A DNA stretch of 64,000 nucleotides from positions 53,010,001-53,074,000 of the forward strand of contig CM060731.1 of assembly GCA_030704615.1 (NCBI GenBank). Direction: 5' to 3'. Source of the stretch: Takakia lepidozioides (lineage: Eukaryota; Plantae; Bryophyta). The translations under genes were made by a program, and so were the position numbers. Under the pieces are notes generated by a model. It did not search any database. It was given only the letters and a program-made list of their open reading frames with translations, and was not told where the DNA came from. Of the stretch, positions 21,545-51,851 are shown one piece after another (the stretch's first letter is position 1; each line of letters starts with the position of its first letter).

Positions 21545-22811
21545 TTACTGCCATGGAGAATTTCTACTTTGTTTGGATTCTGGGCCGGCCATTGGCAGAG
21601 CTAGACATTGACCCGATGGAATGGTCTTGGAAATTCTCGGGGTCGCCTAAGCCCTTCTTTTCCTACACAACCAGAAGGATATAAAGCTCTCTCTAACCAT
21701 CAATGCTTGAAAAAAAAATGGTAAGCCAAGCAATATGGCTTTGAGTCATGATGAAAATTGGTCTACCATTTGGAGCTCGGTTTGGATAAAAGCTCGCCCA
21801 GCCAAGATATCGGCCTTCCTTTGGCAAGTGGTCAATAGGGCTCTCAAAGTGGGTGAATGGCTGCAGTTTCAAGCAGCCCTGATATGTGATTGTTGTACTG
21901 CTGGTATTATGGAGTCTCTGGAGCATTGTCTCCTTTTTTGTCAGGCCCCCGCCAAGATCTGGCCTCTGGTGAAAACCTTCTACAGGAACTGGGATATTAA
22001 ATCTCTTTCTATTATAGATCTGCTACCCAACTACGATAGGAATACCAAGCAGAGATCTCTTAACTGTCCTGTTTTTTAGACTCTTCGCAGTTCCACCCTG
22101 TGGCACCTTTGGAAGGCTCGCTGCAGGAAGACCTTTTCAAGGGAAACAACCTCGATCTCCGCCCTTCTTGCTTGTGTGTTTTATGACCTAGGGGTAGAGT
22201 CAAGAAAAGCCTGGCACAAAATTTGTGCAGATGTGTGCGGCAGCCATCCACTCTGCCTTCCGAGAGTCCTGGGGCAAGCAGGGTCTTATCTGCCACACCA
22301 CTGCGTTGGACACCTGCAGCTGGTCCAAGCTCCCTCCCCCTGGCTGGCGGGATCTACGCTCGCCCCTCTCCCCCGAATTTGAACGAGGTATCAATCGGAA
22401 GCATTTGAAGCCATCATCTTTGGCCTCCAGGCTTCACTATAGATAGGGTTCTCTTTTCATCATGATTACCCTCGAAATTATGCCTTTCTAAGCATGCTTA
22501 GATTAGACGCTCAATCGAGGGTCTGCTCTCGCCTTGGACAATTGTTAAGTTTAAAATACTTGTTCCATCGACCTTCTCTCTTAGCTCGGCTCAGATCGTA
22601 GGCTTTAGGTGCAGCTCTTTAAGCTGCTTTCAAGGACACGAGATTAGCATCTTCGTGATTTTCTGTCTTGAAATCTCTCCAGGTGAGAGGTAGGGATCTG
22701 TTTACACTACTTGCAGTGGGTGCCTTATGGCGTATCAGGGGTTTTAAAATTTTTCCCCTCAATAATTATGAATAAACTAATCAGGGCCTTCCCCTGTTCT
22801 CCTAAAAAAAT
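21545..22811 (+). mobile_element. 5'-truncated degenerate LINE (L1-like): ORF2 C-terminus with zf-RVT region, 3'UTR and A-tail
   Basis: WSTIWSSVW...KISAFLWQVVNRALKVGEW...CDCC...ESLEHCLLFC. The 3' end aataaactaatcagggccttcccctgttc...aaaaaaa is shared with the minus-strand LINE end at 54467-54536. Confidence 0.8.
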
Positions 22812-25351: not shown

Positions 25352-25465
25352 GCCAGTCCGCTGCCCAACAGTCTGCCAGTCCCCTGCCATCCAGTCCAAT
25401 GACGGCGCAGGATCGCCACCGTCCATTCCCATAACCCATCCGAGCCCTCCATTTTTAGGGCTGCG
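25352..25465 (+). repeat. Left TIR of copy A (inner part; pairs with 37343-37467)
   Basis: gccagtccgctgccc...ccgagccctccatttttagggctgc versus gcagccctaaaaatggagggctcgg...gcagcggactggc. Confidence 0.9.
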
Positions 25466-25638
25466 AAAATGGCAATGATCTTCCCACCAAATCCCAGCCA
25501 CTCTCTATTGACGGCTGTTTGTTGTCCGATGTTGCGGTAGGCGTTTCCATGCACGCGACTGTTCCTCTTTTGCGCGCGATGTTCATGATGATGATGAAGC
25601 GTGTGCTTGAACATGAGAGGACTGTCTGGGCACTACAG

Positions 25639-25899
25639 CCACCATCGTGCATATGCTTCCACTATTTTTGCCTTCTTGTTGTGCTTTCGGGAACCTTCGT
25701 TTTATGGTTTGGTTCTATGTCATAAATATGGAAAATGCGGACATCTGTCGTCGATAACGTCCTCTGCTTGTGATCCGTCATGATACGTTTAGCCCCTTCG
25801 TACTGCATCCCTCATGAGAGCCTTCATAAGTTTAGTTCGTTAAAGGAACCCATGGGTAACATGGGCGCGAAAATGGTGGAAGCGTATGCACATGGGGGC
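25639..25899 (+). ncRNA. miRNA-like foldback 1 (copy A)
   Basis: Arm 25647-25668 gtgcatatgcttccactatttt pairs with 25870-25891 aaaatggtggaagcgtatgcac (20 WC + 2 G:U on the + transcript). Conserved in copy B. Expression unknown. Confidence 0.5.
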
Positions 25900-26087
25900 G
25901 TGTATTGCAGATTTCGTATCGGACGATGGGACTATTTATGGACCAGTATAGCGGCTTGCATCCGTCGTGCATAAGTTGTGGAAAAGGGTGGAGAATCTGA
26001 AAAAAAACCCAGCTTTGTGATGGATCCACATGGTATTATATAGGGATGGCAGCACAAAAAAGCAATCACGGAACACCATCCAGTCGT

Positions 26088-26195
26088 AAGGTCCTCAAAC
26101 ATCCACACGCACCTGCTGAATGCAGATGTCTGAGCCACGACGGGAGATGTCTGAGACAATTGCATCTGCAAATGCGCGTGGATGTTTGAGGTCCG
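26088..26195 (+). ncRNA. miRNA-like foldback 2 (copy A)
   Basis: ggtcctcaaacatccacacgca...tgcgcgtggatgtttgaggtcc. The same hairpin is present in copy B at 50564-50702. Confidence 0.45.
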
Positions 26196-26202
26196 TTGTG
26201 TT

Positions 26203-26848
26203 GCGAGTCTGTTCACAGTGGGTCCGCTGGCCCGTCAGTGCTCCGGATATTCCCCTTATCGCGTGCATAACAGTCAGTTTGGAGGCGGTCTGCTGGAAGT
26301 CCGTCTGTTGGGATAGCAATCTGTTGCACTTGTGAATTTGTCAGTCTGTTGTGTCGGAAGTCTGTTGCACTAAGTCTGTTTGACTTCTTATTTTCCCTCC
26401 GTTCAGTCTTTTGGCTTGTTCTCCCTCCCGCCAGTCTGGCGAAACGTCCGTCTGCTGGACAGTTCTCCTCTATGGATATCAGTCTGTTGGACTGTGCATG
26501 CATCAGTCTGTTGTGTCGCGAGTCTGTTCACACTGGGTCCGCTGGCCCGTCAGTGCTCCGGATATTCCCCTTATCGCGTGCATAACAGTCAGTTTGGAGG
26601 CGGTCTGCTGGAAGTCCGTCTTTTGGGATATCAGTCTGTTGCACTTGTGAATTTGTCAGTCTGTTGTGTCGGAAGTCTGTTGCACTAAGTCTGTTTGACT
26701 TCTTATTTTCCCTCTGGTCAGTCTTTTGGCTTGTTCTCCCGCCAGTCTGGCGAAACGTCCGTCTGCTGGACAGTTCTCCTCTATGGATATCAGTCTGTTG
26801 GACTGTGCATGCATCAGTCTGTTGTGCCGCGAGTCTGTTCGCAATGGG
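26203..26848. repeat. About 313-bp direct tandem duplication rich in AGTCTG
   Basis: gcgagtctgttc restarts at 26203, 26518 and 26829; the two units are nearly identical. Confidence 0.9.
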
Positions 26849-27460
26849 TGTGTTCGACTTTCCTGTTCTCCCCTTACTCTTTTTTGTCTTCATTCCACTG
26901 GCAGGGAAGTGCCTCCAATATGAAGCCGCTTCGCCTCAGCAAAGCGAATAGTCCGGTGGACTGGCGGTCCGATGGACTCTCGGCCCGATGGGAAATGAGT
27001 CTGCTGCACTTGCGAGGAGCGTGGATGAATTTAGTACGATCCGTTCGTTCGGTGGACGTATTCAATGCGATGACGGCGATAGTTGGCGCCTGTGAATCGC
27101 GCCACGTTGGCAGTGGCCATGCCCGCTTTCCCCCTTCTACTTCTACTTTCTCCATTCTCTTCGCGCCTGTTTCTTCGCACAGTTTTGATTGCTTTGTTTT
27201 CCTCTTTGCGTTTCCATCACCGTAACGAAAGACGACCGTTCTTCCCTAGGTGTGGAGAGTCGCGGTGAGCCGCGAAGCATCGCAAACACGCTCACCTTCG
27301 TAACAACTCGAAGTTCATCGGCTCGATGAGGTTCTCATTTGCTGCGGTGTTTCCATTCCATTCTGTGTCCTCTTCTTGCTTAGGGCGAGTCTTTTCATAG
27401 GACTTTTATCTGTCGCTCTGTCGCTCATTGTCCTTGCAACCTTCGTTTCATTCTGCAGCG

Positions 27461-30400
27461 ATGGAGGATGCTTGTGAAAAGGTTGAGCGGACTGGTTGGA
27501 TTTTGTGCACCAAACAGACTGAAGAAGGAGCGAAGGTACTGGTACTCACCAGACGAGTTTGATCATAAAATAGTGGAAGCATTTGTAGACCTCTGCGCCC
27601 GGAAGCCCAAAAACTCGAATTGGCAGAAGGACAAGCTCTTCTGTCCCTTTTGTGAAGAGGTAATCAAGGACAAAATCCAACTAAATCGGCATTGTGTTGA
27701 CACGGGTTGCAAGGAGACTGTTGCAATGATTCCACGGTAGTGATTTCAGCAGCCTTGGCCGATACTGAAAGAAATGTCGATTGTCAAAGAGCCCATGCGC
27801 TTGCGCGGATCAGTGCTTGATCCCCGCACTTTGAAATTAGACGAAGTGCGCGCACGGTATGGGGCGTCCATTGTGGTGCCCATCAATGGAGGATTTGCAA
27901 GTGCAGGACGCTGGACGCTCCCAGAAAATGTAAACTGAACTAGTGACGGGGCCCAAAAAAGGAGAGGCAAAAAAGGGAAGGCTGGAAGGTCTGCTCGCGA
28001 GGCAAGGGCAAAATCCACGCAACAGACTGAACCCCGTCATGGGTGGCAGACCCACACCATCAGTACTTATACTGAAAGTGAATCTGCTCAGGGCCTGGAA
28101 GGGGTGACAAGTCCAGTGGACATTGACTTGGCCTGACGAGACTCGCAGCAGACTCCACAAATATCGCGACCCATGCCATCGGTTTAGGGTCAAAACCAAA
28201 AACTCAACAGAGCACTAAAGGGCCAGTCTGCCCTGGCACATTGCGCCTCGTTGCTTTGGCTTTTCCCACTAGAGTGCCCACCAATGGGGATCCGACTTCA
28301 TCCGTTATTTCTACAGAGTTTGCCCAGTCAGGTCTGCTACGCACATTCATCCGATAGCGGAACAGAACTGGTTGAACAGCTTTGAAGATTAGATGACGAT
28401 GATGAAGTAGAGGAGGTAATGGTCAGTCTGACCGCCCAGTTCTGTTCTCTGTGCTGTTTGAGTCCATCATCGGGGTCACGTTGTCTTATTCAGGTCTGGT
28501 CTGGTCATTCCCTCTGCGTTTCTCCTCAGTCCGCTGGCTCTTCCGCTCGTCAGTAGTCTGTTTTATACTCGCTGCATACTTACTGAGTCCTTTTTCAGTC
28601 GCTAGTCCAGTCCACTGGTATAGTCTACTAGTTGCCTCCACCCTACGTACGCACGTTACAGTCTGCTGGTCTGTGAGTCCAGTCCCGCTGCATGAGGTGA
28701 AGATAGAGTCCACGTCCATGTTCCTGACGTCGAAGTTCTCTGCCGTATACCAGGATGAACGTGTTTCTATTCGTAGGGCCATTCAGGCTTGGCGGAAACC
28801 TAGCAATGATGCTCATTTACAAGCGACTGCAGTGCGTCGGAAGTGGACCGCGTGCGAGAGTACATATTAGTGAAGTATCCTGGGTCATCTGCTGCTATAA
28901 CGACATTACATATTGAAGACGCGTCGGGGAATGCGTCTGGGACAGCCGAGTCTGCCATCCAGTAGACTCCCATTCAGCAGCCGTCATCCAGCAGACTCCA
29001 GAGAGCAGACTCCCAACGAGCAGCCCTGTCATCCTGCAGACTCCTCTCCAGGAGCCATCATGCAGCCCATGCCAATGGAAGTCATGTCACCACAGACTGC
29101 GGACGCAGCAACTGCCTTTCTCTCACATAGCACGGCGTTTTTTGCAATTTGGCGATCGCCATCACCGATAATTCGCCCCGGAGCTGAAGACCTCACACTT
29201 CCCCGGCTTAGGATGGGAGAAATTATCCCATTTGGATTGGCATAATGAGCTCCCACGGATTGTTGCGGACCGCCGTTGGTCATTTGTACCCTTTCATTAT
29301 CCATGGGTTTTCTATTGAGGAAGCCAACCATGTTCTAGAAGCCGCCTCTGCTGGGCCATTGAAAACACACAAGCGACCAAAATGCGCCGCCTCTACTTGT
29401 GCAGCTGATTCTCATGGATGACCCACGGCCTGAAGACCTCAGACATATGCCTATGGCACATCCAATTTTTTGGGGTGCGAAGAAATCACTTGTTCGGATT
29501 GACTGAGGAGGACTTTTGAGCGCATGGTAGCTTCCTTCCTACACACAGATGGATGCAATTTGGCAATTTCCGCTCATACAAACAGTTGATGAAGGATCTG
29601 CATAGTTTGAGATGGACTTACTCCATTGAACCGACCATTCACAGAAGTTTGTGGTGGATGAGGCATTGCACTGGTTTCATTGGTGATGGAGCGAGCAGTA
29701 TTCGACATTGTTTTGCAGAATCCAATGTTTTCAACAGTCCTGTGGTTGGGATCGCCAACTGAAGACCCGCATCGGCGCCATTGCTCATCTCGATGGACGC
29801 ATGCCTGTGCCTGCAAATCAGGACATTGGCCTCGTCGGAATCTCGTGGAAGGAAAAGAATGGGCAACTTTCGTGTTTCAGCTCCGTTTCTTTTGCCTACG
29901 TTTTTACAAGTTCACTTGCATAACCTGTGTTGCAGGACGAGTTGATCTAGAGACAAGCAAGTTGCAGGCTGCTTTCAACGCTTTTGCCAGAGGGTGTCAA
30001 GGGACCTTGTTTCTGGCTTACAAGAGTTCGGGAGACTGTCCAGCAGACTGCCCACAAGAAATGTCGAACAACATATTCCCCACGACACATGTTGGGCAGA
30101 CTGCCCAAGTGCTGGAGACCGAGCATGTGCACCAAACCATCCCGGGTTAATAGGCCGATCACTCCCAGCATACTGCCCCCCCCCGCACACACATACTTCA
30201 GTATGTGCAAACAGTAACTGAGCGGTGCAGCGAACTTTGCAGACATTGCAGCAGACCGAGAACAGACCGGCCAAAACAACTGCCCCTCATCCTACTGTGC
30301 CAGCAGACCAGCAACATGGCCACCAGACTGCCCCTCAATCAACTATATCAACAGACCGTGCGGGCAGACCGACCAATCCGCCCAGCAGATTGCCCTCATC

Positions 30401-33139
30401 AAGACCGTGCGCAGACCGACTAATCCAGCCAGCAGATTGCCCCTCAGGCAATACTGTGCAGCACACTGGCGAACCTACTCATCAGATGGCCGAGCAGACT
30501 ATCCGGAGACTAACAGCTAGTCTGTTCCTGATCGTGCAACAGACTCGGATGCACTGGCCTCACCGGGACCCTGTGACGAATTTCTGCTGGTTCCCACAAC
30601 ATGTTTTTGGATCTGCCAGTATGAGTGTTTTGAAACCGAGTCACTTTTCCCCCCAGGCACATTCACTGACGACGTCATCAGGTCACCGGTAAAGGCATTC
30701 TTATTCCCACTCCCCGTGGCCTGCCTTCTTTGACCTCCAAGTTAGTCCAGTTTTCGTGCGCTCATGGCGAAAGCCATAGATGAGTCCTACGTGTGACCGA
30801 ACTCAATCTGGGAACGCAAAACCTTTCATGATCTTACAAAAGAGTCTGAGGAGCAATTGCCCCCGGTGGGTCTTCCATACTAGTTCTTGATGTTCCCAGT
30901 CCATGGAGATCCGAACACCCAGCCGCTGTCCACCAAGACTGACCATCACACTGAACAGTGGACACATCCGCAGACTAACCAGCAGACTGCACAGGTCACA
31001 GATGGAAGGACTGACCAGGATGCTTGGAGTGGCAGACTGCACAGCTCAGCTCTGACTGCACAGTTCAGATTGCACGGCATGACCAGCACACTGCACACTT
31101 CACAGAGGGAAGGACTGACGACCAACTGCCACCGAGCACATTGCCCACATTGAGGAAGAGACTGAACCGCAGAGTTGCCAGCAGACTGCACAGTTCACAG
31201 ACGAAGAACCGGCGGCCGAGCAGACTGCCCACATTGAGCAACAGACTGAATATGCTGGCAGGCACACTGACAAGGAACCACATGTGCGCAGACACCGTCT
31301 GGTATAGCGCTGGATTACATGGAGTCTGCTCCCTCACCCCTTGGGCAGGTTGTGCTTGTTTATGTTTTAGCACATTGTGAAATTGGACTAATTCGACATT
31401 TTTCTCGGTATCCTCACAGGATGTTCGTCCCTCCGTCGGCAGACTGTCTACTTCTGAGGACATGACATCTTTCCGCCCATGCTGCAAAGGGGATCGACAG
31501 CCAAGAAAGGTGTGGGGTGAGCACGCCCCTCGATGCGCGGGTCAGTTCTACGCATGCGACCCACGAAGCTGCAAAGACAGGTCCAGCAAGTGTAAACAAC
31601 CTGCTGACCAGCCTCTGTTGCGAAAAGGGGGCAGCAGCGCTGCGTTTGTCTGCTCTATCCAGCCCGCCTACAGCTGTCCCTGCTTCCCAGGGGAGAGGCA
31701 AAGCCAAGAAGCGGCACTGTCGTGGACCATGCTGAGGAGGTCGAGGAGGGTCCGAGTACCAAGAGACCGGCGAAGAAAAAGTCTGGCGTCTTTATGAACA
31801 AGAACCGCAAGCTGGCCTTGGACAGAAGTCTGGCGTCTTTATGAACAAGAACCGCAAGCTGCCTTTGGACATGAAACGAAGATGTGGGTCGTTTCCGTGG
31901 AGCAGCTGTGCTCAAGTCTGGCCTCGCGTCTTTGTCGTTAAGTGCTTTGCGATCTGTTGTGGTCAGTCTGCTGCTGGTTTCATCATTGTCTGTTGTGGTT
32001 AGTCTTGTCAGTCTGATGAATTGTTCAGCCTGTAGAGTGTTTGGTACCATGTTGATGTCAATCTGTTCAGTACATGAGGCTTCCCGAAGGATGGTCTGCT
32101 CTGTGCAGGATGGGTGCTCGGTTTTGGCAAAGCACATGCTCTGCACGTGAAGGCAGGTAATTCCATGCTGATGTTTTTTGAAGGGGACCCACGGTTTGAA
32201 TGCGGACTTTCGCCGGATGACATAAAGGCGGTCCAGAAGGTTGAGTCGGAGTGCACAGATAGACTCCTGGAGCTGTGGTGTCGATTCTATGAGAAGTCGG
32301 TTGAGGCTGCATTCATCAACACTATTGCTATTCTTCCAACGTCGACGTGGACGGTGTTGAAGTCATTGGGGGTGGGGCAACATGAAAGCCTTCTGGAGGT
32401 CTTGAAAGGTTGCCTCAGCACTGAACGACTGGGCAAGGACTTGAAAGAGTGCGATTTCATTTTGGTACCAATTGGGGACGAGTAAGAACTCTTCTGAGTC
32501 TGCTGAGACTGTCTCCGGAGTCATAGTCTGGTTTCGTAGTGTCGTCTTGACTTTGAGCGATTAAGTTGACCTCTGTATTTGTGCAATGGACTGGGTTTGA
32601 AGATTGAGTCTGCTGAGTGCTGAGTCTGCTGAGTGGTCGGTCTGCTGAGTGTCAGTCTACTGAGTCTGCCCATCATGATTGTGCAATGACGCCATGTTGT
32701 TTGATACCATTGTAGGGGGCACTAGAGTGTTTGTATCATCGACCTCCGCAAGGGCTGTTACACTCACCTGAACTCTATCAGGGACTTACATAAATGTCCC
32801 TTTGTTCTAGGGTGGATTCGGAAGCTTCATGCGCAGTGCTTAGGGTACTCGATGGACTCACCAGAGTGGCATGAGATTGTCCAAGCATTTCAGTTCCACG
32901 CGCCTGATGTGCCCCAGCAACCATTCAGCTGGGAGTGTGGCTTTTACGTCATGTCATTCATTCAAGTGTTTTATGAGTGGGTAAAAGTCAGAGCAAATGT
33001 CTCCAAGACTGCAAAGCCAGAGAGAGGAACACCTTTCACGAAGGACTGGTTTACTTTCAAGTTTGCACTTGGGCAACGATTGCAGTGTGCCCAGTATATC
33101 GTGTGGGGGTTGGACAATGTAGAGAAACTGCTCTCATGA
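27461..33139 (+). pseudogene. Copy A accessory gene: N-terminal C2HC zinc finger, unknown central domain, Q/T-rich linkers, C-terminal Ulp1/C48-type cysteine protease (disrupted)
   Basis: MEDAC...; CPFCEEVIKDKIQLNRHCVDTGC; WMQFGNFRSY; CDFILVPIGDE/GH*SVCIID...QQPFSWECGFYV. Several frameshifts and stops relative to copy B. Confidence 0.85.
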
Positions 33140-33186
33140 GTATGATGTACTTGTCATGTGAAGTCTATGTACCGAAATCAAGGGGA

Positions 33187-34251
33187 ATCTGTCGTATGAG
33201 GTCAAAATACCCGAAATGACATGAATTTCTTGACTATATCGAACAGTACTGGAAGCCTAAAATAGCAATGTGGTGTACAGCAGCCCGCAATGTCCCTCAT
33301 GCGAGCCAAGACACAAACGCAAGCATTGAGGCATACCATGGAAATCTGAAGGCAAGACTTGCCATGGGGAAAGGCAAGATGAGTGGTCGTAGAGTGGACT
33401 GGCTTATATGGGAACTCACTGGCCGTGTGCTAACACACTACTGGTACGCAATCCATTTGAAGACCCACGGGTTCATAAGAAATGACAAACATGAAAAGTA
33501 CATATCCAGTTCTATACTTGCGGCACGAGACATTCCTGCTGAGAGTGTTACTCTTCCCTTGGGTCCTGGTGAACCAGCCTACGTTCTCAGCAGCAACCAC
33601 CCCAGCACAACATACATTGTTTACAATCCTGATTGCGATTGGGGTTGTTGCACGTGCCCATGGGCAATGAAGGGAAACTTATGCAAGCATCAGGTCCGTG
33701 TCCTGAAGATGCTTCACCCTGACCTGGAGGATGGCCTCCTTGTGCGCGCTTGTGGCACGGCGCTGGGAACCATTCATGGAGGATTACCTAACTTGCTCTT
33801 GGGCAATAGTGCCGGCGGCATCGACGAATCCAATCAGTTCATGGAAAGACATCCTCCGGATGACTTCCCCTATGACGAGGCACCTCTGCAGGTCTCAGCC
33901 TCATTGGAACAAGAATTCACGGACATACTTCGCATTGTAGGTGATGACAAATACCTGGAGGCACATGCCCGATCTGCTCTTCATATGTGCAGAGGGCAGC
34001 TCGTTGATATCCTGGCAAAAAGTGCGGCTGGAATGTTGCACCCTGCGGCAGCGAAGGCTTTCCGTCCTCTGAACGACAACAACAACATGTCTCTGAAAAG
34101 GAGACGAGATTTCGTGGAGGCCTGGAAAACCCGGCCTAGGGTTTTGCGGAGAACCAGCAAGAGGGTGTCTGCACCTGCACCTGCAGCACATATATACTCG
34201 AAAATTTGCAAGGTTTCAGGTCGTGTAGATGTCATGAAAAAGACAATATAA
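33187..34251 (+). pseudogene. C-terminal half of copy A transposase (catalytic E and SWIM finger), lying inside an inversion
   Basis: ICRMRSKYPK*HEF...WKPKIAMWC...SQDTNASIEAYHGNLK...RVDWLIWEL...CTCPWAMKGNLCKH, collinear with copy B 40630-41689. Confidence 0.9.
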
Positions 34252-34395
34252 GTCTGCAATGCCTCGAAAACAGACAAGGTTTCACGTCGTGTAGGTGTCA
34301 CGGAGAAGACAATATAAGTCTGCAATTCCTCAAAAAGAGACAAGGTTTCATGTCGTGTAGGTGTCACGAAGAAGACAATATAAGTTTGCAATTTC
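34209..34395. repeat. 66-bp tandem repeat x3 spanning the transposase stop codon
   Basis: caaggtttca at 34209, 34275 and 34341. Confidence 0.9.
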
Positions 34396-34882
34396 TTCTG
34401 GTAGCATTGTCCCTTTCTGAAATACAAGTCCGCAATGGACTAATGCATAGTCTCCCAATGGACTCCTCCAGTCTCCCAACTGACTCCCACACAGTCTCCC
34501 AAGCATAGTCTCCCAACGGACTCACGCACAATCTCCCAACAGAGTCACAGTCAACAAACTGCGAGCGCCAGTAAGCCAGTCTGCTGCCCACTCCAAAAGT
34601 CTGCTCACCACACTTCCACCTCATCCCTACAACTTATGCCAATCCAGCGTCCCAGCGGACTCATGGACATGGTGCCTCCCAGACTAGGTACCAGACCCAG
34701 CAGTCCTAGCCTCGGCAGTGTATTGCTCGCACATTCAAGCTCAGCAGACTCGGGTGCACAGTGCATGGAAAAATTGACACCATTGTGTCCATTGAGTTTA
34801 GTGACAACATTACAAAACATGCCAGCACCCACAGTACACAAAAATGCTCATCACCACTGGAATAGTACGCGAAAAGACTCAC

Positions 34883-37198
34883 ATTTTTTACAACCCACCG
34901 AAGCGCTCTTTTCTCGTTGCGTGGTCCCCCTCTACAGTACATGAGGTCTCCCATATCCTTCAACAAGTTTACAGTGGTCACCGGATCCTTTGTTTTCTTG
35001 CATGATTGCTTCACCCATGCCTTGCGGACATGCCAAAGGCAGAGGAAAATGAGTACTCCTTCAAAAACAATTCTGCACAACACACATGGTACACATTAGA
35101 GTCTTGGGATCGGACTGCAATGGTGGACTGCCGGAGTGGACTGTAACAACGACCTGTATCAGCGGGCAGAGCCACTGGACTCGCCCAGTGGACAGTACAA
35201 TGCCATGACGTTGATGTGCTGGAATAACCCCATTGGACTACCCAGTGGACTTCCCCTAGCTAGGACTGGGGCAGCGGACTGCCCCAGGGACTGCCGAGTG
35301 GACTTGGCAGCGGACGGCCGACCCCAGGGACTGCTGAGTGGACTTGGCAGCGGACTTGGCAGCGGACTGCCAAGCGGACTTGCCGAGCGGACTGTCGGGG
35401 ACTGCCAGCGGACTTGCCAGCGGACTGATGACCGGACTTGACAGCGGACTACCAGTGGATTTGCCCAGCGAACTACCATCGGGTTTCGCCACAGGAGTCT
35501 GCCAGTGGACTATAGCAATGGACTGCTGCAGTGGACTTCGACAATGGACCGGTGCTGTGGACCAATAGACTTACCGAATAGCGTTGATTTCTGCTTCGGC
35601 ATCGTCCACAATGAAGGCATTGGGTCGCCAGCTCGGCAAATCTGCGAGGAGTGAATCGCGCAAGGCTCTCATCCACGGAACCAGGTCTCTTGTCCGATTC
35701 CTCACGGATAGGATATAGGCAACTGGTATACCGTTCAACCACTCGTCGAAGACCATCAACGTGTACAATGGGAACTGTTGGAATGCACAATGTAAGATGG
35801 TCAGAGCATGCAAATTCCGCTCAGTTCTGCACGAGAAGACTTCATAAGAGTGATGAGGTCTGTAGCGGTTCACAATGGGTCTGCCTCTCGGTCTTCCGCA
35901 ACGTACACAACCCTAAACATACAGAAAGGGTCAGCACACCAAATATTATGTGAATGTTGCATGGTACTATGCTATCATGCTCGTACAAGTCCATGGAATC
36001 GTTCGAATAGTACCTTGTCATGATTTGTCCCAAAGGTTGTATCACATGCAACGATATGGTCATGTCCTAGTTCCAGCATTCGTCGTTTCTGCCACGGAGT
36101 TTGTATGCCAATAGTGAATGTCAAATCTCCATCAAAATGCTCGAATGTTGGCTCTAATTTCTCCTCTTGATAGAAAAAAACGGACGCAGGATTCTGGTCT
36201 CTCCACATGCGCACACTTTCTGCATCATCGGCGTGCTTTTTGAAGGTTTGCCACGCACGTTTCTCGGCAAGGTTGCGAACATCTTGCTCCAACAAGAAAT
36301 CATCGCGGGTCCATGCATCGCCCAAGCCGGTGTTGTTCATCACGTGCTCTTTATGCTCCATCATGATTTGGGCGACCGACAGGCCTCGGCACAAACACTC
36401 GACGACCCAGGCTTTCAATTCCTCGCTAATGTGTGGTGCATAGGCGTGGCGGGTGTTCCTGAACTTTGCGGACTTCCCATGCGAGGGTTTCCCTTGCGCA
36501 TCTGTATGCTCCATGTTGTTGTAGTACGTGAGGACACAGATGTCAGGGGCGAGATAGCATTGCTGGACCTTGAAACAGCATTGGCAACCACGTTTGTAAG
36601 ACTCTCCATACTCCGACTTCTTTCTCCTTGGGCCTTTATGAGGGCAAGATGTTCCAGCACCCACAAGAGGTCCTCCACGCTTCTGTTTTAGATCCTCCAC
36701 TATTGCCTTGTTGGTGCGCTTGTCATCAGGACCGTAGCAGCATTGATACCTGGACAGAAAATTCTAAAATCGATATCCAACGACTTGAGGAAGCATAAAA
36801 TCAGAGAACTCGTTAAACAAAAAAATGGTAACAGACATGCAATGAAACGTCAAAAGGACTGAGGATGGTGCACACATAATACTGGACATAAATGTGTTGG
36901 CTCTGGGTGCTTTTCGCGAGCCGGGTTCCACTTTAGAATGGACATTCACCCAAAACTGAGTGGGGTAGTCCTCAAAACTTTTCTTTCCCAGGATGAAGTC
37001 ACCAACTCTATCCCAAGGTATGCAGGCCTTTTCAACATTCACTCGCACACCCATAAACCCATATTGCGTCTCACTCTTCCAATGGAGATCCTTCCTGTTG
37101 AAGGGTCCTGGTTTTGCTGTTTGCAAACATTGTCGAAGAGGCCGTATAAGCGGGCTTTCCGTGATCAGTATATCATCGGGTTTTGCTTCCACGTCCAT
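34883..37198 (-). pseudogene. N-terminal half of copy A MULE transposase (4 exons)
   Basis: IPWDRVGDFILG; YQCCYGPDD; KRGCQCCFKV...H...H; ACDTTFGTN; FPLYTLMVFD; FIVDDAEAEINAI; FLCLWHVRKAW. Introns at about 36875-36750, 36013-35781 and 35572-35074. Confidence 0.9.
35110..35570. repeat. Intronic array of about 12-bp units (CAGCGGACTTGC/G)
   Basis: Repeated gcggactt/gtggact motifs filling intron 3 of the copy A transposase. Confidence 0.85.
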
Positions 37199-37933
37199 GC
37201 CCTATACAGTACAAAGGACACGCTTCTGAACATGCAAGAAACGCGCCGCAGTACAAGACACGATCGACAACGTGCCAGGAGAATAGCGCGCACGTTCGCG
37301 GCTGCTGGCAAGTGGCAGGCGGCAGGGATGCAGGTTTGAATTGCAGCCCTAAAAATGGAGGGCTCGGATGGGTTATGGGAATGGACGGTGGCGATCCTGC
37401 GCCGTCATCGGACTGGATGGCAGGGGACTGGCCAGCGGACTGGCAGACTGCTGGGCAGCGGACTGGCTCAGTCCGCCAAACTGCCAGTCCGTTGTGCACG
37501 CCAGTCCGCTGTGCCAGTCCCCGCAAGTCCACCCAACAGTCCGCTGTGCCCATCTGCTGCCCCCCAGTCTGCCAGTCCATGCCGGCCGAAGGATCTGGAT
37601 CGTCCATTGTGAGAAACCCATCCGCGCCATCCATGCCAGTCCGCTGTGCCAGTCCCGGCCAGTCCACCCAACAGTGTGCCCGCCAGTCCGCCGCCCATGA
37701 GTCCGCTTTCCTCCAGTCCATTGATGATGCCGCATCTGGACCGTCTGTTCGCAAATGCCATCTGAGCCCTTTCATTTTTAGGGCATGAATTGAAACCTTA
37801 TCCATGCCGCCTGCCACTTGCCAGCAGCCGTGAACGTACGCACTGATGCTCCTTGCACGTTGTCCATCGTGTCCAGTGTACTGTGGCGCGTTTCTTGCAG
37901 GTTCTGAAGCGTGTCCTCTGTACTGTACAGGGC

Positions 37934-40900
37934 ATGGACGTGGAAGCAGAAGGTGATGATAGACTAAAAACGGGATGCTGGATTATACGGCCTCTTCGAC
38001 AAAGTTTGCAAACACCCAAACCAGGACCCTTCAACAGGAAGGACCTCCAATGGAAGAGAGACACGCAAAATGGTTATATGGGTGCCAGACAGAATGTTTT
38101 GAAGGTCTGCATACCGTGGGTTAGAGTTGATGACTTTCTCCTTGGAGATGAGAGTTTAGTGGACTACCCCACTCAGTTTTGGGTGAATGTCCATACTAAA
38201 GTGCAACCCGGCATGCTAAAAGAGCCGAGAGCCAGCAGTTCTCTGAACAGTATCATGTGTGCTCCATCCTCATCGTCCTTTTGTAGTCTGATTGCATGTC
38301 TGTTGCCATTTTTCGTACCCACGTTCACCCTCATAAAGGCCCAAGGAGAAAGAAGTTGGAATATGGAGAGTCTTACATGCGTGGTTGCCAGTGCTGTTTC
38401 AAGGTCCAGCAATGCTATCTCGCCCCCGACATTTGTGTCCTCACGTACTACAACAATATGGAGCATACAGACGCGAAAGGGAACCCCTGTCATGGGAAGT
38501 CCGTTGAGTTCAGGAACACTCGCCACACATACGCACCACACATAAGCGAGGAATTGAAAGCATGGGTCATGGACTGTCTGTGCCGAGGCCTGTCAGTCAC
38601 CCAAATCATGATGGAACATAAAGAGCACGTCATGAACAACACCGGGTTGGGGGATGCATGGACACGGGACGATATTTTGCTAGAGCAGGATGTGCGAAAC
38701 CTGGCCGAGAAACGGGCATGGCAAACGTTCAAAAAACATGCCAACGATGCGGAGAGTGTCCGCATGTGAAAAGACCAGAACCCGAAATCGGTCTTCTTCT
38801 ATCAAGAGGAAAAATTGGCGCCAACATTCAAGCACTACGATGGCGACTTAACATTCACAATCGGCATACAAACTGAGTGGCAGAAGAAGCGAATGCTTCA
38901 ATTAGGCCATGCCCGTATCGTTGCATGCAATGCAACCTTTGGGACAAATCACCACAAGGTACTCTTCATCCCTTTCACAATTTATCCACTTACAGAAGTA
39001 GTGGATGTACGCACACTGGCAGCATCTGACATTCTGCATTTGAACAGTTCCCATTGTACACGTTGATGGTCTTCGATGAGTGGCTTAACGGTATACCAGT
39101 TGCGTATATCATATGCGCGCGTGAGCGGACAACAGACCTGGTGCCGTGGATGGTAGCCTTGCGGGACTCTCTCCTCGCAGAAATGCCGGACTGGCGACCC
39201 AATGCCTTTATTGTGGACGATGCCGACGCCGAAATAAACGCCATTACGTAAGTTTCACGTACCCTCCTGTACACTCGCGTGCAAGTCCATCATCTACGTC
39301 CATTGTCTGTCTCTTTGGCAGGTCCCCTGCCATACAACGCAGTCCTGGCTGCAAGTCCGGCCCATTCATTTCTGCAAGTCTGCTGGCAAACCAGTCCGCT
39401 GGTAATGTCCTCTAGCGAAGTCCGCTGGAAGACTCACTTGCGCAAGTACGTTGCAAGGTCAATTTGCTCGGGTGTGTTGCCAAGGGGTTGCCAACAACGT
39501 CTGGGTAAGTCTACTGCCGGTCTCCTAAGGGCAAGTCCGCCGGCAGACCAATCCGCCGGAGGGGACTGTTTGCAAGCAGTCTGCTGCAAGACTCACGTGC
39601 GCCAGTCTGCTGCGACCTCAGTCTGGTCCAGCAAGTCCGCTGGTAGGCAGGTCTGCCGGAGGGGACTGTTCGTAAGCAGTCCGCTGCAAGACTCACGTGC
39701 GCCAGTCTGCTGCGACCTCAGTCTGGTCGAGCAAGTCCGCTCGCAGGCGAGTCCGCCGGATGGGACTGTTCGCAAGCAGTCCGCTGCAAGACTCACGTGC
39801 GCCAGTCTGGTGCGACCTCAGTCTGGTCGAGCAAGTCCGCTGGCTGGCAGGTCCGCCGGAGGGGACTGTTTGCAAGCAGTCCGCTGCAAGACACATGTGC
39901 GCCAGGCTGCTGCGACCTCACTCTGGTCGAGCAAGTCCGCTCGCAGGCGAGTCCGCCGGATGGGACTGTTCACAAGCAGTCTGCTGCAAGACTCACGTGC
40001 GCCAGTCTGCTGCGACCTCAGTCTGGTCCAGCAAGTCCGCTGGCAGGCAGGTCCGCCGAAGGGGACTGTTCGCAAGCAGTCCGCTGCAAGACTCACGTGC
40101 GCCAGTCTGCTGCGACCTCACTCTGGTCCGCTGGCAGACGAGTCCGCCAGAGGGGACTGTTTGGAAGTCTGCTGGCAACCTAGTCCGGTCGGGATGCCCT
40201 CTGGCCAAGTCCGTTGCAAGACTCACTTACGTAAGTCCGCTGCGAGGTCAGCGTGGTCAGGTCTGATGGCGGTGTCGTGAGGGCAATACTCATGGTAGGT
40301 CAGAGTGGGTGAGTCTGCTGCCTAAATCCATTTGGAACAGACGGGCAAACCTGTCAACTAGACATTCTACTGGGTTAGTGCCCAAATCCACCGGCCAAGT
40401 CCTCTTTGAAGTCTCTCATGTGGGCATGTGTACTTTGCAGGGCTGTTTTTTGAGGAGTGCTAATTTTCCTGTGCCTTTGGCATGTCCGGCGGGCTTGGGT
40501 GAAGCAATCATGCGCGAAAACCAAAGATCCTATCACTGCCGCAAACTTGCTGAAAGATATGGGAGACCTCATGTACTGTAGAGATGGACCAATCAATCCC
40601 AAAGAAGGTCTTGCATGGGTAGCAACAACGCTCCGACGCATGAGAAAGAAATATCCAAATGGGCATGAATTTCCGAACTACATCGATAAGGAATGGCGTC
40701 CTAAAATAGCAATGTGGTGTACAACAACTTGCCATGTTCCGCATGCCAGTCAAGACACCAATGCTAGCATTGAGGCATACCATGGAAACTTGAAGGCAAG
40801 ACTGAGGATGGGGAAAGGCAAAATGACTGGGTGTAGAGTGGATTGGCTCATATGGGAATTCACAGGCCGTGTGCTAACACACTACTGGTATGCAATTCAC

Positions 40901-41689
40901 CTGAAGACGCACGGATTCATAAGGAATGACAAACAGGAGAAGTACATGTCCAGTTCTGTGCTTGCGGCACGCGATATCCCAGCTTGCAATGTCACTTTTC
41001 TGTTCCATCCTGGGCAACCAGCCTATGTTCTAAGCACCAATCACCCAAACACAATTTACATTGTTTACAACCCTGGATGCAAATGGGCTTCTTGCACTTG
41101 CCCATGGGCAATGAAGGGCAATTTGTGCAAGCATCAAGTCCAAGTCCTGAAGTTGCTTCATCCACACTTGCAGGATGGACTCATAGTGCGCGCTCGTGAC
41201 ACGGCGCTGGGAACCATTCATGGAGGATTGCACAATGTGTTTAGGGTTCATGCAAGTGTTGGCGACGAAGAGGGTTTGGGAAATGCAACAGATGGCCCTT
41301 CCACATATGACTTCCCATATGATGCGGAGCCTGTCCTCGTACCATCCTCCATGGATGAAGAATTTGCAGACATACTTCGCATTGTTGGGGATGACAAATA
41401 CCTGCAGAAACATGTGTTGTCTTCTCTTCGTATCTGTAGGGGGCAGCTTGTTGATATTCTCGCCAAGAGTGTTGCAGGAATGCTGCACCTTGCAGCAACA
41501 AAGAGCTTCCGTCCTGTAAATGACAACAACAATATGTCGCTGAAAAAGAAACGAGATTTTGTTGAGGCATGGAAAACGCGACCCAGGGTCTTACGCAAAA
41601 CAGAGAAGAGGGTTGGTGCCCCAACACCTGCAACACACATATACTCCACAATCCGGAGAGTCGCAGACCGTATACCAGTTTTAAAGTAG
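37934..41689 (+). pseudogene. Copy B MULE/SWIM transposase (disabled)
   Basis: Same exon structure as A. Deletion at the start of exon 2, TGA at 38767-38769 where A has W, first catalytic D changed to N (CNATFGT). Retains IVDD, CLWH, IEAYH and SWIM CTCPWAMKGNLCKH. Confidence 0.9.
39410..40260. repeat. Exactly 100-bp-period tandem array (about 6 good copies plus degenerate flanks) in transposase intron 3
   Basis: caagac(t/a)ca(c/t)gtgcgcc at 39587, 39687, 39787, 39887, 39987 and 40087. Confidence 0.95.
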
Positions 41690-41779
41690 AGTAGGAAATG
41701 TAAGAAATGGTACGGTATCATTCTCCCCATGAAATAAAATTTCGGCGATACGATTGCATGTGCACCAGACGTCCAACCT

Positions 41780-41930
41780 GTCTACCAACCAGCCTGGTAA
41801 ACCAGTCTTCTGGCGTCTGAACCAGTCTGCTCAATCAGTCTTCTGCCGTCTGATCCAGTCTGCTCATCCAGTCTTCTGGTGTCTGAACCAGTCTGCTCAA
41901 CCACTCTTCTGGTATCTGAACCAGTCTGTT
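41780..41930. repeat. 33-bp tandem repeat between the convergent genes
   Basis: ccagtctgctca..cagtcttctg units repeated about 4 times. Confidence 0.8.
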
Positions 41931-42579
41931 GTACCAAGCTGGGACTCACTCTTCAAACAGTCTGTTGTGCTAGCCTTCTCCTGAGCAGACCAGTCTCCCG
42001 GTTCTGAACGTGTCTACACTTGGCTGACCAGTGAGCCTCATGCGGTTTGCCCATCAGACTAGCCATTCTCAGCACGGTGGACTCTCATTACTCTGCTGAC
42101 CAGACTTGGCAGTCTACTGGCCAATGCCATCCGCCTGTACTATACCACTCCAGTGACTCTCGACAGTCACCAGTGCAGACTCATGGTTCCCAATCGCATC
42201 TGCCAGTCTGCCGGACTGGTCCCAACTCCTCAATCTGTCGGACTCTCGTCAGTCTGGCGACATTGCCATCTGTCTGCTCACAAGCCTAGGCATACCCTCT
42301 TCCCGTACTCTGGCAGTCTGCTGACTCTCAGCTGTTTGCTGACCAGTGGACTCCCTTGGTATGTTAAACAAAATGATTGTGTGTGCAGAGGTAAGTCCGC
42401 TTAACAACATGCGGTGATTTGGTCACAAATCTACAGCGACTACTCCACACTGCACTCATATGCGACCAATAGGATGTGTATACAAAGTCATATTTTATTT
42501 CGTTGCAAATGCTCAAAAGCATGCTTATATGACAGATGCGTCCTATGGTGCACCTCTAATCTCGGACCCAGATGGATAT

Positions 42580-48500: not shown

Positions 48501-49141
48501 CTGGCTCTCACTCAAAGTACTGATGGTCTGCGTCTGCTGCGTAGACCGTCTCCCTGGCACAGCCCGTGACACTTCCCGACTGCCTTGGGGACGAGTCTGC
48601 TGTTGAGATTTTGCCCTCGCCTCCCGAGCAGACCTTGCAGCCTTTTCTCTTTCCTTCTTCTGGGTCCCATCACTAAGTTTCCTTTTTCTGGGAGCCACAG
48701 GTGATGGCGATGTCAGGTCATGCACATCTTGCATTGAAACATCCGAACCCACCCCATACCGTGCGCGCACTCCGCCAAAGTGCGGGCCTTTGGGTTTGCG
48801 CCACGGAGTCTGGCGGTGGCCGCATTCACCACCCTCATTGAACTTTGAACTGGCCACGGCTTGAAGCCAGGTGGGATATATCGCTTGTTTTTGCAGCCCG
48901 TGTCAACACAATGGCGGTTTAGCTGCACTTTGTCCTTGATAATTTCACTACAGAAAGAACAGTGGAGCTTATCCTTCTGCCAGTTGGAGTCTACAGGCTT
49001 GATTGCGCGGAGGTCTAAGAATGCTTCGACTATTTTTGCATCATACTCCTCAGGTAAGTACCAGTACCTTCGCTCCTTTAGCCTGGACTTGTGCATGAAA
49101 TGCAACCAGTCTGCTCCACCCTTTGCACAAGCATCCTCCAT
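42580..49141 (-). pseudogene. Copy B accessory gene: C2HC zinc finger, unknown domain, low-complexity linkers and Ulp1-type protease, interrupted by a MITE
   Basis: MEDACAKGG...CSFCSEIIKDKVQLNRHCVDTGC; MDDPRPQELRHMPMAHP...WMQFGNFRSY; GHWSVVVIDVWKGFYTHMNF...QQPFSWECGFYV. Frameshifts present. Confidence 0.85.
44277..45346. mobile_element. Non-autonomous AT-rich DNA transposon (Mutator-type MITE, 1070 bp)
   Basis: TIR (T/C)TGGGGGGTGCAC at both ends. Perfect flanking direct repeat GTAAGTAACC (44267-44276 and 45347-45356). Absent from the homologous position of copy A (about 31515). Confidence 0.92.
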
Positions 49142-50563
49142 GGCTGCAGAATCAGACAAGAGATGCAGCGGCAATGAGCGACAGACAGACTAAGAATAAG
49201 AAAGCAGAGAAGAACGGAAAAGAGAATGGAAAGAAACCAAAGCACAAAACACAAAGAGGAAAGCTCACCGGGCAACATGCGACGGTTGTTGCGACGATTC
49301 GGTGCTCACGCGACTGTCCGCACCTCGAAAACCTAACACGCACCAAAGAAAGCGGGCTCGCACCAATGGGAGGTGGACGGGCCCTAAACGAAACAGTACG
49401 AAAGAAGTCCAGCGGGAAGTGGACCCTGCACCGGCGCCCTTTTTTGGCCGTCATCGCATTAAATAGTTGCAGACCCCTCACACGTGCTGGCGGTATGCCA
49501 CTGTACGGACAGTCCAACAGACGGGATGAGTGGGACTATCGTCAGTCTGCCGTCATCGCATTCATCAAGTCCAGCAGACTTACTCCTGATGACAAAGACG
49601 GCCAAGCAGACCGAGTACCCTCCACAAATAGACTCATATGCCACAGTAAGGACAGACTGACGACTGAGGTTAAGCGGACTGACGAAGAGACTAAGGCGAG
49701 TGCGGAGTCTGGTGCGGAGTCTGATGACGTGCCGCGACGTGACTGGGCCTCCTTACCGCCGTCGCTGCATTTATTGCGTCCAGCAGACTCTAATGACATA
49801 ATGGCCGAATAGACCCACTGCAAACAAACTTGCGCAACAACAGACTCGTATGCCACTGCACGGACAGTCCAGCAGACGAAAGGTTCAACAGACTGATGAA
49901 GAGACTGGCGCAGAGTAATTTGCGCAACAACAAAATGATTTCTAACAGACTAATATCTTGGATGACAAAGTATCCCCAGGGCGGCCGGGTGATACGGGAG
50001 TAAACCGTAAACCGCGTCCAGCAGACTTACACGTGATAATAATCACGGCTCAACAGACCCAGCGCAAACATACTTGCGCCACAGTAGACTGACTTTGTGA
50101 CAGTCCAGCTGACTGATATCAGAAGAGACGGACAGACCAACAGTCCGACGGCTCAGCAGACTCACGGTAATGCGGATAATTAAAAGGTAGTAGTTAAACG
50201 GACTCATATCCGAAGAGACGGACTTCCTGCTGACCAATGGTTCAACAGACTGATGAGAGAAGAGACTTCGGGGATAAGACAAGAGAAGACACTTTGGAAT
50301 TCGGCAGACAGTGACGGCCCAATAGTCCAGTGAAGAACAGACTCACGCCACACCATACTTGTATCCTTACAAACCAACAGTCCAACAGACCAGACTAATA
50401 TCCCATCAGAACCACGCTTGGCGTCGCCGTCATGCCGTGGTTGCATTTCATCCGTCCAGCAGACTTGCATATGCCCATACTCATGGCACAACACACTGCT
50501 TAGAGAAAGTACTGACAAAGACGCAGTCGAAGAGCCTGTTGATCCACGCGCATTTGCAGTCAT

Positions 50564-50702
50564 AAGGACCTCGAACATCCACAAGCAACGTGAATCCACA
50601 TCTCTCAGCCTACGTTTCCTTTCCCATTGTCCAGTTTTCAAGGAGACGGTAGTGGTTGAGATGTGATGTTTCAGGAGGTGCATCTGGATGTTTGAGGACC
50701 TT
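50564..50702 (-). ncRNA. miRNA-like foldback 2 (copy B)
   Basis: aaggacctcgaacatccac...cacatctc...gagatgtg...tggatgtttgaggacctt. Confidence 0.45.
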
Positions 50703-50814
50703 TGGACTGGATCCTGTTCCGTTCACATTCTCCGCAGTTCCCAGACATGTGGTGGCAGAGATGTCCTCCCCTGAACAGTCTCATCGGTGGACATAAATTC
50801 TGCAATGTATACAC

Positions 50815-51010
50815 GCCCCCACGTGCATATGCTTCCGCGATTTCCGCTATCGTGCTACCAATGGTTTCCTGCTCCATACGAATGAGCTCGGACTCGGAGA
50901 CACACCACAAACCGTAAACGCATGCAATTTTTCCACATATCGTCCTAAAAAATAAGCACGTCAGCACAAAATGAAGGCGAAAATAGTGGAAGCATATGCA
51001 CGATGGTGGC
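50815..51010 (-). ncRNA. miRNA-like foldback 1 (copy B)
   Basis: 50822-50846 pairs with 50977-51002. 50980-51010 is identical over 31 nt to the copy A arm. Confidence 0.5.
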
Positions 51011-51352
51011 TATAGAGCCCCGCCAGCCCTCTCATGTTCAGGCACACCCTTCATCGTCATTAAAATCGCCATAAACAAGAACAACAGCCGCATGCGTGCA
51101 AAGTCACCTCCGCAACATTGGACAACAAATAGCCGCAAGAACGAGACAACAAGAACGAGTGGGCGAGTTCGTGGCAGGGTGTTACGATCTTCCATGCCCT
51201 AAACATGGATGGCGCGGATGGGTTTCTCAGAATGGACGATCCAGATCCTTCGGCCGGCGCGGACTGGCAGACTGGCAGACTGGGGGGCAGCAGACGGGCA
51301 CAACGGACTGTTGGGTGGACTTGCGGGGACTGACACAGTGGACTGGCGTGCA

Positions 51353-51851
51353 NNNNNNNNNNNNNNNNNNNNNNNNNNNNNNNNNNNNNNNNNNNNNNNN
51401 NNNNNNNNNNNNNNNNNNNNNNNNNNNNNNNNNNNNNNNNNNNNNNNNNNNNNNNNNNNNNNNNNNNNNNNNNNNNNNNNNNNNNNNNNNNNNNNNNNNN
51501 NNNNNNNNNNNNNNNNNNNNNNNNNNNNNNNNNNNNNNNNNNNNNNNNNNNNNNNNNNNNNNNNNNNNNNNNNNNNNNNNNNNNNNNNNNNNNNNNNNNN
51601 NNNNNNNNNNNNNNNNNNNNNNNNNNNNNNNNNNNNNNNNNNNNNNNNNNNNNNNNNNNNNNNNNNNNNNNNNNNNNNNNNNNNNNNNNNNNNNNNNNNN
51701 NNNNNNNNNNNNNNNNNNNNNNNNNNNNNNNNNNNNNNNNNNNNNNNNNNNNNNNNNNNNNNNNNNNNNNNNNNNNNNNNNNNNNNNNNNNNNNNNNNNN
51801 NNNNNNNNNNNNNNNNNNNNNNNNNNNNNNNNNNNNNNNNNNNNNNNNNNN
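51353..51851. other. Scaffold gap (about 500 N)
   Basis: Run of N; true size and contiguity are unknown. Confidence 0.99.

Follow-up and report, generated by a model that had tools for sequence, protein, structure and literature searches.

The 64,000-nt window of Takakia lepidozioides DNA analysed here, from a lineage close to the base of the mosses, contains two diverged transposon copies in mutually inverted orientation, A (~25375-37432) and B (~37495-51352). Copy A is bounded by terminal inverted repeats of 90 nt, the outer one (25375..25464, + strand) being a 98.9% inverted match to 37432-37343, and copy B by repeats of ~149 nt (91%); the ends of A sit within arrays of the word CAGTC[CT]G, leaving its exact boundary fuzzy. 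In A, the accessory gene has a first coding exon (27461..27737, +) that encodes a C2HC-like zinc finger and is preceded by an acceptor-like ttctgcag; an intron appears to end at 27459. Five kb downstream, on the same strand, is a Ulp1 (peptidase C48) domain (32726..33136, +; Pfam PF02902, E = 8.7e-9), which is also matched in copy B (E = 1.1e-7). Long terminal inverted repeats and a peptidase C48 accessory domain are the features of a Mutator-like element with a Ulp1 gene, and on their sequence A and B are classed as long-TIR, word-painted, Mutator-like transposons. A profile search of the elements for a MULE/MURA-type transposase domain returned no MULE-domain match at E up to 0.1, and a SWIM finger scored below threshold (17.6-18 bits, against a cut-off of 19.6). 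Copy A is a broken, decayed element; the frame from the first ATG of its exon 1 is shifted, and TAG TGA follows at 27738. The leader upstream of the gene carries two hairpins, and between these and the gene lies a 315-nt unit in tandem duplicate (26191..26849, +), rich in CAGTCTGTTG words.

The first of these, hairpin 1, is an inverted repeat that lies 270-530 nt inward of the outer end of each copy, upstream of the accessory gene. The initial annotation had described in A a 22-bp stem, in which the sole imperfections were two G:U pairs on the + transcript, and had proposed that both loci be folded. The stem is as described, with 25647-25668 pairing with 25870-25891, and extends to ~50 bp; folding gave z = -6.1 in A (0/200 shuffles as good) and z = -2.0 in B. 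The extended 5' arm of A is 51 nt long (25630..25680, +; core 25647-25668), and is separated from the 3' arm (25858..25908, +; core 25870-25891) by a loop (25681..25857, +) that has diverged from that of B in both length and sequence. In B, the 5' arm is at 50977..51002 (-; core 50980-51001) and the 3' arm at 50822..50847 (-). The distribution of G:U pairs between strands favours a gene-sense RNA (8 vs 1 in A, 7 vs 5 in B), and the sense-strand fold is more stable than the antisense fold by 20.5 kcal/mol in A and 9.4 kcal/mol in B. Axtell and Meyers are said to have limited MIRNA structures, in 2018, to foldbacks of at most 300 nt, with no secondary stem inside the duplex and up to five mismatched positions in it, of which at most three are in asymmetric bulges. 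Both copies lie within these limits, A with a 279-nt foldback, 22 pairs, 2 G:U and 0 mismatched positions, and B with a ~181-nt foldback, 2 mismatches and 1 G:U. The candidate guide in A (25648-25668, +) starts with U; on thermodynamic grounds, the AU-rich duplex end would lead to preferential loading of the strand from the 3' arm, which counts against a guide from the 5' arm. As for its place relative to the transcript, hairpin 1 may lie in a 5'-UTR intron, or may be upstream of the transcript.

Hairpin 1 has been kept in both copies, the remainder of the 2-kb leader being unalignable between them. The leader block with the 5' arm (25594..25690, +) is ~88% identical to B in the A/B global alignment, and BLAST matches 25508-25685 to 51138-50963 at 81.8%. 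Within this block, the 31-nt arm identity noted in the initial annotation is exact, B 50980-51010 being the reverse complement of A 25638-25668, and the full identical run reaches 32 nt (25637-25668). The drift of the partner arm and loop, and the consequent asymmetry in which the 5' arm is more conserved than either, had also been recognised and are equally evident: the 3' arm differs at 4/22 core positions, and the loops, measured from one 22-nt core to the other, span 201 nt in A and 135 nt in B, a freedom of arm spacing that fits a hairpin better than a protein site of fixed geometry. Most of the changes in the 3' arm are wobble-compatible substitutions, and across the consensus stem 5/7 of the substitutions between A and B leave the bases paired, by a G:U or Watson-Crick switch, against ~1/3 expected (p ~0.04 by a rough binomial estimate). 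Every conservation statistic is weak (p ~0.04-0.05), because only two independent hairpin copies are compared. A coding explanation of the 5'-arm block was rejected, as the frame open in A carries a stop in B. Judged by these patterns, hairpin 1 is taken to be a real, selected leader hairpin of the ZnF/Ulp1 accessory gene.

The same 16-22 nt motif occurs three times per element, with two inverted copies forming the hairpin and the third lying antisense in exon 1. The 16-mer ATGCTTCCACTATTTT has six sites in the window at three or fewer mismatches, against 0.59 expected, and 0/100 shuffles gave six. In A, these are in the 5' arm (25653-68, +, 0 mismatches), the 3' arm (25870-85, -, 2 mismatches) and exon 1 (27567-82, -, 0 mismatches); in B, they are likewise in the 5' arm (50980-95, -, 0 mismatches), the 3' arm (50829-44, +, 3 mismatches) and exon 1 (49021-36, +, 1 mismatch). 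A subterminal transposase-binding repeat was considered and rejected, as every copy of the motif is either in exon 1 or towards the accessory-gene end, with none close to 37432 (A) or 37495 (B).

The complementarity between arm and exon stands as it was initially reported. The exon site in A (27567..27587, +) lies in the K-I-V-E-A-F codons of the first coding exon, and opposite the 5' arm it forms 19 Watson-Crick pairs, 1 G:U pair and 1 mismatch, with 16 pairs contiguous; the homologous site in B (49021..49041, -) matches the shifted A arm at 19/21. When 21-mers of the whole A leader were compared with the A gene body in 4092 tests, the arm-exon match (19/21) alone reached at least 18/21, the next best being 17/21. 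The B site matches B's own arm at 18/21, which is no longer an outlier in that copy. Plant miRNA targets are recognised by a penalty of at most ~4 and the absence of mismatches at guide positions 10-11. The A arm on the A exon has a penalty of 3.0 (G:U at position 2, mismatch at position 5), and the B arm on the B exon one of 4.0 (mismatches at guide positions 8, 17 and 20), such that both pairings are within the range of plant target sites; slicing would be expected opposite guide positions 10/11, at 27577/27578.

Two further proposals of the initial annotation fared differently. Firstly, a check for arm/target covariation found none: the B exon site has changed while the B arm has stayed identical, and the exon changes include a synonymous GTG>GTC substitution mid-site. 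Conservation of the exon site is no higher than that of the exon overall (3 changes in 21 nt, against 79.5% identity), and coding constraint explains the site, with no extra conservation. Secondly, the suggested origin by inverted duplication of the target is not supported, and a long duplication was rejected: arm-exon similarity ends at 19 nt in both A and B, beyond which no arm-gene homology was found, and the flanks are at shuffle level.

The second conserved leader hairpin (A, 26090..26194, +, with 30-nt arms and a 45-nt loop; B, 50557..50709, -) has no complementary third site in the manner of hairpin 1. Targeting of the transposase by this hairpin was considered, and rejected as no match rose above background; similarly, a match to the Rfam family mir-3149, whose 32 bits fell short of the gathering score of 100, was treated as chance.

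The best single reading of hairpin 1 is that it encodes a self-targeting small-RNA circuit, a reading proposed tentatively and at less than an even chance. Firstly, transcription of the sense strand would yield a near-perfect stem suited to a Dicer-like enzyme; in plants, transcribed near-perfect inverted repeats get diced. Secondly, small RNAs from the sequence-constrained 5' arm would be antisense to exon 1, and would be loaded into AGO. Thirdly, these small RNAs would slice or repress the accessory-gene mRNAs of the family, both in cis and in trans. The outcome would be feedback, by hairpin siRNAs or a young miRNA, on the helper gene that the element itself carries, and this feedback might benefit the element or its host. 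The persistence of both arms as an inverted repeat, in leaders that are otherwise unalignable, favours the small-RNA reading, which is weakened by the divergence of the B exon site without compensation, by the defective state of copy A, and by the lack of extended arm-target homology. To call such a circuit self-limiting would be to read selection from two copies, and in theory a transposon would be selected for self-limitation only under restrictive conditions. The most specific form of the small-RNA reading, a bona fide miRNA-type hairpin conserved across subfamilies, with a guide that would slice the mRNA of its own gene and act in trans on sister copies, is unlikely.

The alternative that survives best, and which is a serious contender while also falling short of an even chance, is that the hairpin or its half-sites form a working cis element in the leader or promoter, operating without small RNAs. 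An RNA structure could tune the translation, stability or splicing of the accessory-gene transcript, or DNA sites could be bound by the element's zinc-finger protein, its transposase or a host factor. The exon match would then be no more than a trace of exon 1 sequence having been copied into the arms, for instance as gap-repair filler DNA; alternatively, the exon would hold a third binding site. Such an element would accommodate the extent of the conserved block, which at ~95 nt reaches ~55 nt upstream of the arm without a pairing partner, as well as the presence 200 nt downstream of a second conserved hairpin that lacks a complementary target. Furthermore, the B arm is unchanged though its target has drifted, hence B's exon does not explain the constraint on the arm. 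However, the motif is missing from the other end of the element, and so is not a classic subterminal transposase site, and the spacing of the half-sites differs by 66 nt between the copies. The nature of the substitutions and the strand bias of the G:U pairs point to RNA pairing, and, given the hairpin, the probability that an exact 16-nt antisense match to the exon would arise by chance is estimated at ~1e-3 or less.

It is doubtful that the three motif copies are a neutral relic of an ancestral micro-duplication, surviving through hitch-hiking or chance with no present function. Such a history would be easier to credit given that the comparison covers two lineages only, that a run of 32 identities in a block of 82-88% identity has an estimated chance of ~0.02-0.05, and that copy A has decayed; nevertheless, A and B both retain the arms and the second hairpin while the surrounding leader is beyond alignment, and the pair-preserving substitutions argue against neutrality. 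Least probable is the insertion of a small MITE-like element in the ancestor of A and B, as although ~51-nt imperfect terminal inverted repeats do surround a 177-nt core, there is no target-site duplication at 25630 or 25908 in A or at the homologous points in B, the conserved sequence runs on beyond the left arm, no other copy is present in the 64-kb window, and the exon match would stay unexplained.

The self-targeting small-RNA circuit would have parallels with several known systems. Mu killer of maize is a hairpin RNA that silences MuDR, produced from a host locus that arose when a partial MuDR underwent a long inverted duplication. The Takakia hairpin RNA would likewise be complementary to a gene of a Mutator-family element, and could trigger silencing, but the hairpin belongs to the element itself and is conserved between subfamilies; rather than an inverted duplication of hundreds of nt, it has arms of 51 nt, of which only 19 nt match the gene. 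Young plant MIRNA genes are reportedly born by inverted duplication of their targets, as Allen et al. are said to have described in 2004. The Takakia hairpin is like these in having a foldback arm complementary to a protein-coding exon, but the arm-target similarity of young loci extends well beyond the miRNA, and none is detectable here; on the two copies compared, an old MIRNA locus would fit this lack of extended similarity.

Known transposon-encoded regulatory devices are few, comprising VANC, miR820 and the Athila siRNA854 (PMC6719617), all of which act on the host or its silencing marks. Of these, miR820 is a transposon-borne miRNA found in rice CACTA transposons (Nosaka et al. 2012, reviewed in PMC6719617), and is similarly a miRNA-type hairpin within a DNA transposon, conserved among element copies. 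However, miR820 targets the host de novo methyltransferase OsDRM2, whereas the only known site complementary to the Takakia hairpin is in the element's own accessory gene. In addition, miR820 is expressed, with compensatory changes in arm and target, whereas the Takakia hairpin is known from sequence alone, with no compensation seen. The VANDAL elements of Arabidopsis, with VANC, resemble A and B as Mutator-like transposons that carry an accessory gene and whose non-coding DNA is filled with copies of a short word (PMC6719617). They differ in that the VANC system is one of protein and DNA. To our knowledge, VANDAL elements have no counterpart to the combination of a hairpin and exon complementarity. 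Were the small-RNA circuit real, a hairpin directed against the element's own helper gene would represent RNA-based self-control, or competition between copies, in a lineage near the base of the mosses. Were the hairpin instead a protein-binding or structural leader element, it would still mark the one non-coding stretch of these painted elements that is under strong constraint, and provide a handle on the control of the accessory gene.

Searches for relatives covered sequence collections, curated families and the literature. Rfam had no match to hairpin 1 at E up to 1, placing it in no curated miRNA family, and the exact 22-mer was absent from JGI metagenome contigs and IMG/VR; no hairpin copies were found through ORFs overlapping the arms or through exact look-ups. 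The arm sequence was not found in the text of published papers, and the literature search found neither a small-RNA study of Takakia nor a paper on a MULE/Ulp1 hairpin. By contrast, exon 1 had one relative among 1.84 billion protein representatives, P0001, which is the single member of its 90% cluster and as a query retrieved itself alone. Its contig, L001, comes from a Takakia lepidozioides shotgun metagenome (SRR15431198) and spans A 27250-30065 only, thereby including the exon site, with the hairpin outside. Against the exon site of this independent Takakia copy, the target penalty of the A arm is again 3.0.

Two related DNA transposons lie tail to tail in inverted orientation within the window, and each carries, in the ~2-kb leader before the first coding exon of an accessory gene, a foldback (hairpin 1) that, judged by its folding and conservation, is real, non-random and under selection as a hairpin. 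Copy A (~25375-37432) has terminal 90-nt sequences 98.9% identical in inverted orientation, and the terminal matches of copy B (~37495-51352) extend over ~149 nt at 91%; a 500-N assembly gap (51353-51852) adjoins the outer end of B and leaves the actual boundary of this copy, along with any target-site duplication there, undefined. The copies are 72-86% identical across their alignable parts, and CAGTC[CT]G words “paint” the ends and non-coding parts of both. Tandem arrays of word-bearing units differ between them, being 100 nt x 6 in B (39531-40129), and 315 nt x 2 (26191-26849) and 66 nt x 2.8 (34209-34393) in A. In each copy the accessory gene occupies one strand, with exon 1 (27461-27737 in A) encoding a C2HC-like zinc finger and a Ulp1/C48 protease domain lying 5 kb downstream of it (PF02902, E = 8.7e-9 in A and 1.1e-7 in B), and a transposase-like gene runs convergently on the other strand. 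Because the SWIM finger of the latter is sub-threshold only, and a domain search of A and B found no MULE-domain match in it, the label “Mutator-like” is held with reservation.

The sequence statements of the initial annotation were all reproduced. In copy A, hairpin 1 has a 22-bp stem (25647-25668 with 25870-25891) whose sole imperfections are two G:U pairs in the + strand RNA, and which extends imperfectly into 51-nt arms (25630-25680 and 25858-25908) that are 73% complementary. Folding of both loci, as had been proposed, gave -105 kcal/mol for a 281-nt stretch of A (z = -6.1), and the same fold for the B homologue (z = -2.0). The 5' arm, which is the candidate guide, had been described as identical over 31 nt between the copies; the identity spans 32 nt (25637-25668), and the unlike loops, put at about 200 and 130 nt, measure 201 nt in A and 135 nt in B. 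With ≤3 mismatches allowed, the window contains the 16-mer core six times, where 0.59 occurrences would be expected: each copy holds three, of which two form an inverted pair in the leader and the third lies antisense in exon 1.

When the 2-kb leaders of A and B are aligned globally, they match almost nowhere, excepting a few blocks: a short one next to the TIR on its inner side, a 95-nt block at ~88% that holds the 5' arm (25594-25690), a ~75-nt block that holds the 3' arm, and the core of a second foldback, hairpin 2 (A 26090-26194, B 50557-50709); exon 1 itself also aligns. Of the seven A/B substitutions that fall in stem columns of the hairpin 1 consensus (RNAalifold), five retain pairing through a switch between Watson-Crick and G:U, and the remaining two, both in B, disrupt it. 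G:U pairs are commoner on the accessory gene's sense strand (8 vs 1 in A, 7 vs 5 in B), these counts being inflated by a T- and G-rich + strand, and the sense fold is more stable than the antisense by 20.5 kcal/mol in A and 9.4 kcal/mol in B. Freedom of loop length, pair-preserving changes and an invariant 5' arm are as would be expected for an RNA hairpin whose guide arm is constrained in sequence, each of these signals reaching only ~p = 0.04-0.05 in a comparison of two sequences. A conserved peptide encoded by the 5'-arm block was excluded, as the frame open in A has a stop in B.

The best single mechanism would be a self-targeting circuit, in which small RNAs derived from hairpin 1 act on exon 1 of the element's own accessory gene, because it accounts for both the invariant 5' arm and an otherwise improbable antisense match. 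This circuit rests wholly on sequence, from two copies, with the target match already eroded in one. The action of such RNAs on exon 1 is advanced as a tentative possibility, and the stricter reading, a precisely processed miRNA, is improbable. The pairing of the arm with 27567-27587 stood as originally claimed, with 19 Watson-Crick pairs, one G:U and one mismatch, 16 of the pairs being contiguous. Every 21-mer of the A leader (25375-27440) was compared, in either orientation, with the body of the accessory gene (27461-33136). Matches of at least 18/21 were confined to the 5' arm, where four windows that overlap one another peaked at 19/21; the next best of the 4092 tests was 17/21, and the A leader had no comparable match to the transposase half. 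Given the hairpin, an equally good match to its own gene would arise by chance with an estimated probability of ~1e-3 or lower.

The match in copy B is no longer such an outlier. The anticipated covariation of arm and target was absent between A and B: the 21-nt exon site of B carries three changes (a central synonymous GTG>GTC, TTT>TTC and GTA>TTA) while its arm is unchanged, so its own pairing falls to 18/21 (penalty 4.0), guide position 8 being mismatched. This divergence of 3/21 equals the exon average (79.5% identity), and coding constraint alone explains the conservation of the site. Nor was an origin by inverted duplication of the target, as had been envisaged, demonstrable, since similarity between the arm block and exon 1 stops at 19 nt for either arm, and the flanks score like shuffles. 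The 5'-arm candidate guide begins with U; in the putative duplex, the AU-rich end holds the 5' terminus of the 3'-arm strand, and it is this strand that the thermodynamic asymmetry rule would favour. The arm sequence was not found in published papers, and no literature on Takakia small RNAs was found.

A serious rival, about as likely and equally tentative, is a cis element of the leader, protein-binding or purely structural, that functions independently of small RNAs. It covers the extra conserved sequence, in that the 95-nt block runs 55 nt upstream of the arm without a pairing partner, and it covers hairpin 2, in which a core GGTCCTCAAACATCCA is paired with its complement across loops of 45 nt (A) and 91 nt (B). 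Hairpin 2 has no complementary site elsewhere in the element, and its sole Rfam match is to mir-3149, sub-threshold at 32 bits vs a gathering score of 100. The partnerless 55 nt and targetless hairpin 2 point to constraints on the leader that targeting does not account for. If the cis element is the explanation, the exon match has to be a leftover from how the motif arose. An acceptor-like ttctgcag directly 5' of the ATG, kept in A (27452-27459), B (~49150-49143) and the metagenomic contig L001 (201-208), suggests a 5'-UTR intron, within which both hairpins and the word arrays could lie. It is unlikely that the motif is a subterminal repeat bound by the transposase, as it is absent from the other end of the element. 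A nested MITE is also unlikely, there being no target-site duplication, no other copy within the window, and conservation that continues beyond the left arm.

Copy A is defective. Among 1.84 billion representative proteins searched, the sole relative of exon 1 was P0001, encoded on L001, a 2.9-kb contig from a Takakia lepidozioides shotgun metagenome (SRR15431198) that is 92.9% identical to A 27250-30065 and does not include hairpin 1. Protein searches, exact look-ups and a scan for the arm in metagenome and viral contigs found no family copies beyond L001. The accessory gene of A is degenerate: its ORF (27461-27743) carries a frameshift after MEDAC when compared with B and L001, and an in-frame TAG TGA follows ...AMIPR at 27738, where L001 reads straight through. 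Copy A also carries a ~1-kb internal inversion, because 33205-34199 alone matches B (40649-41646) in direct orientation, all other A/B matches being inverted. The B counterpart is part of a single 411-aa ORF (40454-41686, with a weak SWIM finger), and hence the transposase gene of A is disrupted, although its terminal repeats are 98.9% identical.

The nearest precedent for hairpin 1 is miR820, which is carried by rice CACTA elements and targets a host gene (PMC6719617). A transposon-borne hairpin aimed at the element's own helper gene, if true, would differ from this precedent in its target.

Elsewhere in the window, a 10-nt word of another kind, CACAGCCC[GC]T, makes up an array at 291-1976 that is rich in GC (63%) and strongly skewed; this array is probably one end of a further transposon with a painting word of its own. 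Flanking A and B at a distance of a few kb, 22716-22799 and 54591-54506 form an inverted match of ~85 nt at 83%, which may be part of a larger inverted structure or of another element's ends.
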